A stretch of 64,000 nucleotides of DNA, taken from NCBI GenBank assembly GCA_048013815.1, contig CM106585.1:2480001-2544000 (forward strand). The letters are read 5' to 3'. This stretch comes from Setoptus koraiensis. Lineage: Eukaryota > Animalia > Arthropoda. Below the pieces are notes generated by a model. That model saw nothing but the letters and a program-made list of their open reading frames with translations, ran no database searches and was not told where the DNA came from. The position numbers were made by a program, and so were the translations under genes. Numbering within the stretch: position 1 is the stretch's first letter; every line of letters begins with the position of its first letter. Positions 39,330-45,894 of the stretch are shown one piece after another.

Positions 39330-39378
39330 CATAGTTATGTAAAATCAGGTCATTTTTTATTTTTCAAAACTTGCGCCT
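39330..39378 (+). repeat. Direct repeat A, copy 1 (partner at 42951-43000)
   Basis: CATAGTTATGTAAAATCAGGTCATTTTTTATTTTTCAAAACTTGCGCCT; differs from copy 2 by one substitution and a 1-nt indel. Confidence 0.92.
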
Positions 39379-40095
39379 AGATTTCGCACGCCCATAACAT
39401 CACTGATCAGAAGCGGAATGCCCAATTGCGTGTGTGGAATCCAATGCAAATCAAATTCCATCGCATCCGCGTGGGTATATTTTCGTTGCAATCGTGTGCA
39501 CCCCGCTGGGTATAAGCAGCTTCGTTAGACCATCAATGAATCAGGACACATGGACGAAAAGCACAAACGCAATCGTTCGTTTTTGTTGTTGTTGTTGTCG
39601 TCTACTGATTATATTTTATTACAGGATATGTACAGCTTTGTATGTGATTTATAAAAATTTATCCATAAACCAATTGAGATTATATCATATTATTATATTA
39701 CATTATATGTTACATTGATTTACTATCATCATGTCTACATGATGACCGAGGCAGCAAGAAACGGAGCCGCTAATGTTTGATTTAATAGACGATTATAGCA
39801 TGTCTTTGTCTCATAGGTCAATGAGCATTCGGAAACGAATATCATAATTATTGTTATTATCACCTTTGTACAACCATTCCAATGAACTATTCTGTATCAA
39901 CGACAACCACTGTTTGTTATTTCATTATCAATACTATTTTCACTTGTATTGCGCACGATTGAATAGAGCGTATGAAGGATAAATACACACATAGAGAGTT
40001 AAACCGTCCAAACGTCTGTCATATTGTATTGGATTTATTTGTATATATCCATTCGTCGATAATATAGCACTGGAAACAACCGATAGTCCATAGTT

Positions 40096-42278
40096 ATGGG
40101 AAAACAAGGCAATAATGATACCACATCAACTAATGATTTAAATCAGCAACAAAAATCTACCAGCAACATTGCGCCACCAGACGATAAATCCAAAATAATT
40201 GTAGGAATAGATGTCAGCAATACATCTAACTCCCCCAACGAAATGGCTATCACTGTCCAAGATTCCAAGATTAATCTATTAAGATCTCTATCTGAAAATA
40301 ATGATGATCTGAATTCCAAGCCAGATTCGGACAACAATGTCAAATCAGCCAACATTAGTAATTCCAGTGAGTACATACAATCTCAATTACCCTTAAATAC
40401 CCTGCTACTTTTCGTTGCTCCTCAAACAATATACTAATCAACAAGATCACATTATTATATACCTGCGTCTATTTCCCATCAACAGATATTGATAGCGATG
40501 ATTCCGAGCAAACTGGATCGAATAAGGCAATGCAACAAAACGAAGAACCCGAGCAGATGAGAAAATTATTCATAGGCGGCCTTAATTACAGCACATCCGA
40601 AGAGTCGTTGCGAGCACATTTTGAAAAATTCGGAGAAGTTATTGATTGTGTTGTTATGCGTGATGCGCAAACAAAACGAAGTAGAGGCTTTGGTTTTGTA
40701 ACTTATTCAAGCTCATCTATGGTAGATAGAGCTCAAGAAGCAAGACCACACAATGTAGATGGTAGGGAAGTTGAACCAAAACGCGCCGTGCCTCGTGAGG
40801 TAAGTAGACCATTTTTAAAGCCATTTCCAGCCAGACAGGCGATTTTATTTGCTGCACCAGGTAAATAATTTTGAAAGAAAGGCTAGAGCTTCCTCGAGTA
40901 TATTGGCTGACTGATGTCTAGCTGAGAGGGCAAACGTTTGAGTGTCCTAATGCGAAATGTTCTCCGTCCGTCAGTTTGTGAATGTATTGCAGTTGAATTA
41001 CTTTATTTAATTTTAATGAAACTTTTATTATTATTAGGTCAGTCGAACCAATATTTTAATTTATCTAATATTCTACAACATTACTTTGACTAACGACAAT
41101 ATAAAACACAATATCAAATACAAACTATATAAATGCAACTTATTTTAGGAGTCGGGGAAACCAGAATCACAAGCAACTGTTAAAAAAGTTTTTATAGGCG
41201 GTCTTAGTGAAGAATTAGAAGATTCAGATCTGAGAGATTATTTTGAGAAATTTGGCAATGTCGTTAGTGTTAATATAGTTACCGAAAAAGAAACAGGAAA
41301 GAAGAGGGGTTTCGCATTTGTCGAATACGATGATTATGATCCAGTCGATAAGATAGTTTGTGAGTTCAAAAGCTTACTTATAAAAATCCCACACCTAATC
41401 AAAAGTAACTTTGAATAATCTATAGGCTAGCACATATATCACAGACAAATGAATGTTGTTTAGCCAGCTTTAATATGTTATTGCATGACTAGATTATCTA
41501 ATCATCATGATTATCTCAACTCCATTCATATGCTCTCTAAACCAATTCAATGAAACTAATTCAAGTAACCTCTAATCTCATGCAGTGAAAAAGCACCACT
41601 TCATCAATGATAAAAGGATGGAAGTTAAAAAAGCGTTATCCAGATTTGAAATGGGCACCTTGAAAAGGAAAAACGACCAAAGATCAATGGGTCCTGCTCT
41701 AGGACCGCCTAGATGTGAACCTATGAGTCGGAACGCAGCCATCTGGGACAATGACCCATACGGCTCTGCCCCCTATTCAAGATACACCAATCAGACGGGC
41801 TGTGAGTAGAATTTTATACTTTATCGCAAAACAGACCTAAATCAAATAATCAGTACTAACACACTTTAAAATCTAAACTTTACCCACAGATGGATATCAA
41901 CCGCATTATCCGCCCTCAAGCTATGGTCCCAATGCTTGGTCAGAGAGCAGTCAGAGCTCCTCAGGTCCCCATTATAGCAATTATGGACGTGGGAGTTACA
42001 ATAGAGGCTATAACGGTTATAATGGAAGTTATAGTAAGTAACAGCTTGAGCAGCTTTCCCCCCATCTTAACAATTCATTAGTTCGGTACACTGACGAAAA
42101 ATTATTTTTTGTAATCTTAGATGGCCAAGGATCTTGGACTGGCGAGTATTCTAGTTATAATAATGGTAGCTATCCGGCCTCACAAAGTGGTGGCGGTCCA
42201 ATGAGGCTCAACTATCAGAATCGAGGGAGCGGACCCTACGGGAGTGGTTACGGTTACCATGGTAGAGGCTACGGCTAA
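40096..42278 (+). CDS. HNRNPA1: hnRNP A/B-family protein (two RRMs plus a Gly/Tyr-rich tail); exons 40096-40366, 40486-40799, 41149-41359, 41586-41801, 41890-42033, 42121-42278
   Basis: [13 protein letters not shown]...[19 protein letters not shown]...[19 protein letters not shown] and an M9-like GGGPMR...RGSGPYG. Five GT-AG introns keep the frame. The symbol is family-level and the first coding exon is less certain. Confidence 0.9.
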
Positions 42279-44684: not shown

Positions 44685-44708
44685 AATAAACTTTGGACTT
44701 TGTTTATT
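44685..44708. terminator. Back-to-back polyadenylation signals: AATAAA at 44685-44690 (+, SLC10) and 44708-44703 (-, overlapping the GTF2H2 stop)
   Basis: Motifs read directly; their use is inferred. Confidence 0.55.
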
Positions 44709-45894
44709 TGACTGATATCTTACTACTGTTGCAGCAGCACGGACAAAAATGCAATGTTTCATGTATAAATATGTCACAGTCTAGACAAAACACGCCTTGA
44801 CAGATTGTGCATTTGGCGGCATCGTTTTGCTGAGGAAGCAATGGGTTATTACAAGAATAGCATAAGCCTGGCTTGTCCAGTCTAATCTCTGAGAAAAGTT
44901 CCACTGGAAATAGATGATGAAAAGATCTGGCTAAGTGGGCTGCAGAGACTAATGTCAGTCCGCACACACTACATTCAATAGGTAGATCACAATATTTGGC
45001 ATGACACTGAGGACAGTAGTAACCATGAGAGCTGAAATTAGTTTGTCCTGACAAATGACAAGAACACATCGAGGGCTCTCCTTCGTTATCGTTAGCATAC
45101 TGAGAAAAGCCCATTTTAATCAAGGAAGACTGAGTTTCTCTAGTCGCTGCAGGTGGGCTCAAGTGCTCAAAGATTACGTCCTTGAAATGTCCATCATCAA
45201 TAATAACATCGTAAGATCCTTTGGTGGCAACGGTCAACGTCTTTAGAACTTTGACTTCTGCGGATAGTCCAACAACAGAACATCTAATGTTGAATGAAGA
45301 TAAAGATTGTATTGTGGCGTGAATATCTCCAGGGTCGCATGTCGTTAAGCTTCCGGCTAAAAATAAAATCTCTTTACTCGTGTGATTGGGCATATGTCTC
45401 AAGGTACAACAAGCCAGTTCCAGAGAATTTTGTAAAGATGGTTCGCCAGCGCATAGGACATGTCGGAGTTGTTCTATACATGCTAAATGAGATTTCATGT
45501 CACTGCTTAAGGGTGACAACAACTCTGCTCTTTTGTTTTTAGTTACAATAAGCCCTATACGACTTATAGGGTTTAGATCAGAGAACTCGTTCAAGAACAT
45601 TTCCACCAATTTCAGAGTACATGTATAACGAGTTGGTTTTACATCATTCTTCAGCATAGCCTCGCTGCAATCTATGATGATATAAACGTGCCTCATGATG
45701 CCGAGTCGCAGATTTTTTCTTTGAAGAGCCCTCTTTCTTTTATTCCTTTGTATCATCTCCTCTACAGTTGGTTGGAGAAGACCATCCTCGTTTTCTTTTA
45801 TAGCCTCCCATGTTTTCTCATATTCTGTTTCCCATCTGTAACCACTGACAGGTTCCTCGCCCTCAGGGGCATGTTCGCGGTCTATTTGTGACAT
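44704..45894 (-). CDS. GTF2H2: TFIIH subunit p44/Ssl1; intronless
   Basis: GYRWETEYEKTWE, RLGIMRHVYIIIDCSEAM, NPISRIG, GEPSLQNSL, GYYCPQCHAKYCDLPIEC...LARSFHHLFP and FCLDCDIFIHETLHFCPCC. Confidence 0.96.
   Translation of the reverse strand: MSQIDREHAPEGEEPVSGYRWETEYEKTWEAIKENEDGLLQPTVEEMIQRNKRKRALQRKNLRLGIMRHVYIIIDCSEAMLKNDVKPTRYTCTLKLVEMFLNEFSDLNPISRIGLIVTKNKRAELLSPLSSDMKSHLACIEQLRHVLCAGEPSLQNSLELACCTLRHMPNHTSKEILFLAGSLTTCDPGDIHATIQSLSSFNIRCSVVGLSAEVKVLKTLTVATKGSYDVIIDDGHFKDVIFEHLSPPAATRETQSSLIKMGFSQYANDNEGEPSMCSCHLSGQTNFSSHGYYCPQCHAKYCDLPIECSVCGLTLVSAAHLARSFHHLFPVELFSEIRLDKPGLCYSCNNPLLPQQNDAAKCTICQGVFCLDCDIFIHETLHFCPCCCNSSKISVK

Follow-up and report, generated by a model that had tools for sequence, protein, structure and literature searches.

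A patchwork of three copied segments between an hnRNP-like gene and an SBF transporter gene of Setoptus koraiensis that resembles an old scar of templated DNA repair

The locus and its repeated segments

We analysed a 64,000-nucleotide stretch of the genome of Setoptus koraiensis (hereafter the window; GenBank assembly GCA_048013815.1, contig CM106585.1, positions 2,480,001 to 2,544,000 of the forward strand), in which about 577 bp (42432-43007) between an hnRNP-like gene and a gene of the SBF/SLC10 transporter family form a patchwork of three segments, U', B' and A', each with a counterpart (U, B and A) elsewhere at the locus (Table 1). This patchwork has the look of an old copy-and-switch DNA repair scar, and not that of the remains of a duplicated gene pair. 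The assembly comprises 48.8 Mb in two contigs, with the window lying within a 24-Mb contig, and the genome is gene-dense with few introns. The best named relative of the SBF protein comes from the eriophyoid mite Aceria tosichella (36% identity). Eriophyoid genomes are reported to be streamlined, one complete assembly having two chromosomes (PMC11879100), and very little gene order is conserved between eriophyoid species (bioRxiv 10.64898/2026.08.24.746826).

The labels given to the three genes in a first-pass annotation of this DNA, namely hnRNP-like, SBF/SLC10 and TFIIH p44/Ssl1 (GTF2H2, hereafter Ssl1), hold, and each of the genes is present in a single copy genome-wide. The hnRNP-like reading frame opens with the ATG at 40096 and closes with the stop codon at 42276-42278; with the exons searched singly, RRM_1 was matched by exon 2 (1e-19) and by exon 3 (4e-17). 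No second DNA copy of this gene was found in the genome, nor any protein match above 37% identity beyond the gene itself. Of SBF the genome holds one full copy, in addition to the tail carried by B'. SBF and Ssl1 converge on each other, their stop codons lying 19 bp apart, and the poly(A) signal of each gene lies inside the end of the other. At 44682-44712 the Ssl1 stop sits within its own AATAAA, and with stop codons this close the 3' untranslated regions of the two genes must therefore overlap in antisense.

Table 1. Features of the locus, with positions counted from the first nucleotide of the window
Feature	Position	Strand	Remarks
U	39276..39316	+	Source or partner of U'; ends 11 bp before the ATC that opens A
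A	39328..39384	+	57-bp element, partner of A'; in a gene-poor spacer upstream of the hnRNP-like ATG, at a distance of 710 bp
hnRNP A/B-like gene	40096..42278	+	Six exons, read by eye from splice sites; two RRMs; Gly/Tyr-rich tail
3' flank of the hnRNP-like gene	42279..42431	+	AATAAA signals at ~42331-42346
U'	42432..42471	+	~70% identical copy, or homeology tract, of U
B'	42476..42951	+	Decayed copy of B
B' segment	42476-42536		9/61 substitutions, 14.8% divergence from B
B' segment	42537-42614		2/72 substitutions, 2.8% divergence from B
B' segment	42615-42837		1/223 substitutions, 0.4% divergence from B
B' segment	42838-42904		3/67 substitutions, 4.5% divergence from B
B' segment	42905-42951		11/46 substitutions, 23.9% divergence from B
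A'	42949..43007	+	Copy of A; first three bases (ATC) common to the end of B'
Unique sequence between A' and the SBF start codon	43008..43079	+	72 bp
SBF/SLC10-family transporter gene	43080..44684	+	534 aa, intronless; PF01758 1.7e-18
B	44597..45090	+	Parental block: SBF tail, 19-bp spacer, last 129 Ssl1 codons (facing 3' ends)
TFIIH p44/Ssl1 (GTF2H2) gene	44704..45894	-	396 aa, intact; PF04056 4.6e-71 and C1_4
WD40 gene	46526..47998	+	Divergent from Ssl1; found by tblastn with L005 open reading frames; weak WD40 matches

Alignment confirmed the two direct repeats that the first-pass annotation had located here. B' and B (42478-42951 and 44599-45090) are 88.6% identical over 493 aligned columns (E 1e-166), and A and A' (39325-39384 and 42946-43007) are 91.9% identical over 62 columns (E 5e-17), A' differing from A by three substitutions and one indel in ~60 bp (7%). 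Where the two copies meet, GTTATC closes B' and A' continues with ATAG, so that the bases ATC are common to both. The same overlap, to which the annotation had pointed, can be read in the two parental ends, where GTAATC is followed by ATAG (39325-39334) and GTTATC by GTTA (45085-45094). By our own estimate the chance expectation of a 3-nt overlap alone is ~5%.

A-type and B-type sequences each occur twice in the whole assembly, and the two pairs are the only non-simple dispersed repeats of the window. The 264 kb that we examined, made up of the window and of the 200 kb to its left (G000:C1:2280001-2480000), in which 1500 bases read N, contain just one further non-simple local duplicate, at G000:C1:2317688-2322672. 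That duplicate is inverted, with arms that match at 99.5% over 1104 bp, 94% over 316 bp and 90% over 63 bp, and a spacer of ~1 kb. An RNA gene or structure within A was also considered and rejected, as A gave no Rfam match at E up to 1 and the folds of A and A' (z-scores of -0.3 to -2.7 against shuffles) were not common to both copies.

A third patch lies immediately to the left of B'. A search with the 60 bp preceding B' through 12 kb, both strands included, gave 39276-39316, just upstream of A, as its top match. Among 20000 shuffles 7 scored at least as high, and among 19898 real 60-mers 0 and 19 did so. This patch, U', differs from U at 12 of 40 positions (30%). A contiguous source of 109 bp (U, an 11-bp gap and A; 39276-39384) thus reappears at the patchwork in the order U', four unmatched bases (ACCT), B' and A'.

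Two other assignments around this third patch were rejected. An upstream 'gene X' ending at 39313 is a 58-aa open reading frame with no Pfam match, in 2.5 kb that look non-coding, and therefore gives no ground for treating U as coding sequence. A leftward extension of B' to 42411, suggested by a protein-level match to SBF residues 490-506, is not significant at the DNA level and clashes with U'.

Decay and uneven divergence of B'

On the plus strand (42476-42575) B' carries the last 28 codons of SBF, the stop codon and AATAAA, and on the minus strand (42589-42951) it carries the last ~129 codons of Ssl1. The Ssl1 part is a dead fragment. Three indels separate B' from B: 6 bp are inserted at 42579-42584, 25 bp are deleted between 42614 and 42615, and a single inserted base at 42907 breaks the reading frame. 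The deletion takes out the LHFCPCC zinc motif, two conserved cysteines are replaced and the Pfam C1_4 match is truncated. Moreover, all six of the residue differences at the edge of B' that can be polarised with the two relatives described below (L005 and L006) are derived in B'. An open frame of 123 codons nevertheless survives in the dead fragment (42537-42908, minus strand); it has a GTG start and no ATG at its head, and it faces the upstream region of SBF.

The divergence of B' from its parent is far from even (Table 1). The core holds a single difference in 223 bp whereas the edges hold 20 in 107 bp (Fisher p 7e-10), and for a B' drifting alone at half the edge divergence the probability of one change or fewer in 223 bp is 1e-6 or less. 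A near-identical tract bounded by diverged homologous edges points to later gene conversion, and the simplest account is that of an old copy whose centre was subsequently overwritten from the functional Ssl1 gene. The locus would in this respect resemble the concerted evolution, by conversion, of a gene and a nearby pseudogene fragment, since it combines a near-identical core (1/223 bp) and edges diverged by 15-24% with direct repeats 2.1 kb apart and polarisable edge differences that are derived in the dead copy. It departs from that pattern in that two indels persist inside the near-identical zone, so that the last conversion must either predate them or have been split. The former would place both the 6-bp and the 25-bp indel after the overwriting. 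Hypermutation during synthesis was considered as a source of the diverged edges and is unlikely, 15-24% being too high; known polymerase error clusters lie far below such values.

A' is also out of step with its neighbours. With four differences in ~60 bp it stands closer to its counterpart than do U' (12/40, p = 0.004) and the right edge of B' (p = 0.012). None of the models discussed below explains this well, and A' may be under constraint. Taken together, divergence values that span 0.4% to 24% inside B' alone and stand at 7% for A' and 30% for U' describe a structure that is old and partly homogenised, and they do not bear out the suggestion of the first-pass annotation that the locus offers a fresh snapshot of a compact genome purging duplicates.

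Gene order in two relatives

For comparison we used two metagenome contigs from a single metagenome scan, L005 (Ga0268249_1000047, 75 kb) and L006 (Ga0058701_10000401, 30.5 kb). Both, from the Joint Genome Institute (JGI), are intron-poor and apparently represent DNA of eriophyoid-type mites, and they can serve as outgroups for other windows. Their Ssl1 proteins are 68% (L005) and 66% (L006) identical to that of the window and 78% identical to each other; their Ssl1-adjacent SBF proteins are 37-40% identical to the SBF of the window.

In both contigs the gene order is WD40(-), Ssl1(+), SBF(+) and transglutaminase(-). The WD40-Ssl1 pair is kept in the window, where WD40 is the conserved neighbour that anchors the comparison, whereas the strand of SBF relative to Ssl1 is opposite (43080-45894 in the window against L005:7437-10402 and L006:5888-8920). 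The flip is a micro-inversion of a single gene. Its polarity is not fixed by the comparison, because L005 and L006 are sisters.

The hnRNP-like gene of the window occupies the place of the relatives' transglutaminase, and no hnRNP gene was found in the L005 and L006 loci, whose SBF side was covered up to 10 kb from Ssl1. Neither contig contains a duplicate resembling B' or A', no non-coding conservation with the window was detected in either of them, and none of their other genes lies in the 264 kb examined. Matches to their transglutaminase fall on the other contig of the assembly, and DNase II finds its best match 337 kb past the end of the window. Nearly every spacer here is a breakpoint, and that the patchwork sits at the edge of a conserved block says little about its origin.

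The C-terminus of SBF (44541-44681) is ~40 residues longer than in the homologues of L005, L006 and P0001, whereas five other SBF homologues carry even longer tails that look unrelated; tail similarity was not significant either way. B begins inside this additional tail. The first 105 bp of B may be old 3' flank of Ssl1 that was recruited as an SBF tail after the inversion, and if the tail did come from that flank, B would predate the flip.

Origin of the patchwork

We hypothesize, with moderate confidence, that the patchwork arose as one complex templated insertion of ~577 bp, which subsequently decayed and was partly homogenised. According to this hypothesis a polymerase would have extended a broken or stalled DNA end, taking as its first template a short stretch 3.1 kb upstream (U). 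Synthesis would then have jumped to the facing SBF and Ssl1 3' ends, ~2.1 kb downstream, where ~490 bp (B) would have been copied, and would have returned to the first template, 11 bp past the point of exit and at the ATC microhomology, copying a further 57 bp (A) before rejoining. No gene would ever have been present in two full copies. The frameshift, the 25-bp deletion of the zinc-binding motif and the loss of cysteines would represent later decay of the copy, and conversion from Ssl1 would have kept its central part nearly identical.

Several lines of evidence support this reading. First, the U-A source is contiguous and its copy is split by B', a layout that follows directly from a single synthesis which left U-A, copied B and returned. 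Secondly, the donors all lie in cis within 3.2 kb (U and A 3.1-3.6 kb upstream, B 2.1 kb downstream), are intact and are in direct orientation. Thirdly, there is no trace of a second SBF body or of a second hnRNP gene beside B' or A', and a single event stands against the three or four that a duplication of the genes would take.

Insertions templated by switching at microhomologies are an established class of rearrangement, as set out in PMC8421209, and imperfect 'microhomeology' at join points is among the observations of PMC6902434. The patchwork shares with templated (filler) insertions, whether attributed to microhomology-mediated break-induced replication or fork stalling and template switching (MMBIR/FoSTeS), to synthesis-dependent repair or to polymerase-theta end joining, the presence of several cis patches from intact donors a few kb away, a short microhomology at one joint and a return to the first template near the point of exit. 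It is unlike them in being fixed in the germline, old and later homogenised.

The hypothesis should nevertheless be interpreted with some caution, since several points weigh against it. U' is short and only 70% identical to U, and could be pre-existing homeology instead of a copy. The patches are unequally diverged (30% in U', 15% and 24-26% at the edges of B', 7% in A'; chi-square p 0.009), so that a single event requires either a constrained A' or chance. Clear microhomology is seen at just one of the four joints: at B'-A' the ATC belongs to a 5/6 match to GTWATC, the bases ACCT between U' and B' are unmatched, and the outer joints are fuzzy. The 476-bp B' patch is long for fillers of the polymerase-theta type. 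Finally, L005 and L006 are too distant to reveal an empty site.

A stepwise origin is a possible but distinctly less probable alternative. A 109-bp duplicate of U-A would first have come to lie beside SBF, and B' would have been inserted into it later by a separate event. The U-A duplicate could have been a dispersed copy of small size, what is left of a tandemly duplicated hnRNP unit (39276-42431), or a duplication resembling that of a target site, only long, on the two flanks of an hnRNP block that had moved; it may even be that A was copied from A'. Such a sequence of events accords with the divergence of U' (30%), which exceeds that of the B' edges (15-26%). It does not accord with the much lower divergence of A' (7%), which would be as old as U' (p 0.004), and no second copy or remnant of hnRNP was detected. 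The second event must, moreover, strike the 11-bp gap, and an independent insertion there, within a patch of 109 bp, would be a large coincidence.

Somewhat less probable still, and in our view rather unlikely, is the explanation put forward in the first-pass annotation, in which an ancestral A-hnRNP-SBF-B block was duplicated in tandem with its junction at B'-A', after which the first copy lost SBF except for its last codons and the second lost hnRNP except for ~57 bp of upstream DNA. The annotation was right that a local duplication event left its footprint here, with a short microhomology at the join, and a tandem duplication accounts for the order A-hnRNP-B'-A'-SBF-B, for the abutment of B' and A' and for the microhomology. 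Two adjacent units do carry the same left-end and right-end sequences in the same order (A...B' and A'...B) around different genes at single dose. Tandem duplication is also the commonest kind of duplication, and the losses would be in line with the deletion bias expected of a streamlined genome (PMC7738191).

What this explanation does not predict is U', which derives from just outside the unit starting at A yet lies to the left of B'; a tandem junction at B'-A' leaves this piece unexplained. Three events, among them two clean and complementary deletions that left no remnant of a gene, would thus have to be supplemented by another for U'. No similarity beyond that of shuffles was detected between 42279-42475 and SBF, or between 43009-43079 and the hnRNP region, a result with which clean deletions are compatible. 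The divergence of the duplicated parts is strongly heterogeneous. Furthermore, the order predicted for sister species, with hnRNP directly before SLC10, is not seen in L005 and L006, which lends the prediction no support but, these contigs being distant (Ssl1 66-68%), does not refute it.

The consequence that the annotation drew for SLC10, namely that it now has hnRNP-derived DNA upstream, stands in part. A' does lie 72 bp before the SBF ATG. The term 'hnRNP-derived' is loose, however, because A belongs to a gene-poor spacer, 710 bp before the hnRNP ATG, and because either of A and A' could have been the template for the other.

An assembly artefact, with a duplication falsely created by a chimeric read or where haplotypes were collapsed or mixed, is very unlikely, given that three indels and 11% divergence, graded along the sequence, separate the copies, and that a mosaic of three sources, not a repeated unit, is found deep inside the 24-Mb contig. 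The idea that A and B are mobile-element ends has nothing in its favor beyond the repetition itself and was rejected as hardly credible, since B is made up of the 3' coding ends of two host genes, each single-copy, and A, for which the annotation had regarded many genomic copies as telling, is present, like B, in exactly two.

Our preferred reading of one templated insertion can be taken further, although we regard the extension as doubtful: the patchwork could have filled a junction in the very germline event by which SBF was turned relative to Ssl1, or could have been retained since then because it is functional, or both. Linked to the flip, it would represent a small chromoanasynthesis-like rearrangement fixed in the streamlined genome of a mite. 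If retention was selected, A' (7% against 15-30% in the other patches) would be a candidate promoter piece for SBF, and B', renewed by gene conversion, would act between hnRNP and SBF as a spare terminator working in both directions.

The inversion of SBF relative to Ssl1 in comparison with two relatives, together with the position of the patchwork at the edge of the conserved WD40-Ssl1-SBF block, also recalls inversion by staggered breaks. In the Drosophila model such breaks leave duplicates in inverted orientation, one at either end. B and B' repeat each other in direct orientation, and the model was rejected on that ground.

The event that we infer is of an ordinary kind and belongs to a known class; it raises no new question, and its value is that of one documented case. 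As such it is a clean and datable example of how gene-dense, fast-rearranging genomes of the eriophyoid type acquire and keep small duplicated pieces. Beside an essential transcription-factor gene there survives a dead piece of its 3' end, which the parent, on the conversion account, is still overwriting. The case also suggests that no gene need ever have been doubled for a layout resembling duplication with reciprocal loss to appear, a single step being enough, and cautions against taking such footprints as evidence of past gene duplication.

Two minor observations concern other parts of the assembly and of the window. The relatives' transglutaminase finds its matches scattered across 33 kb at G000:C2:23061582-23094537, which represents either a gene with very long introns for a compact genome or a tandem family. 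Simple repeats of one triplet-type family (poly-Q/N/T/C, depending on the frame) occur on both strands across 20 kb of the window, at 16725-16880, 28200-28900, 34710-34885, 35554-35600, 36141-36190 and 37493-37567.

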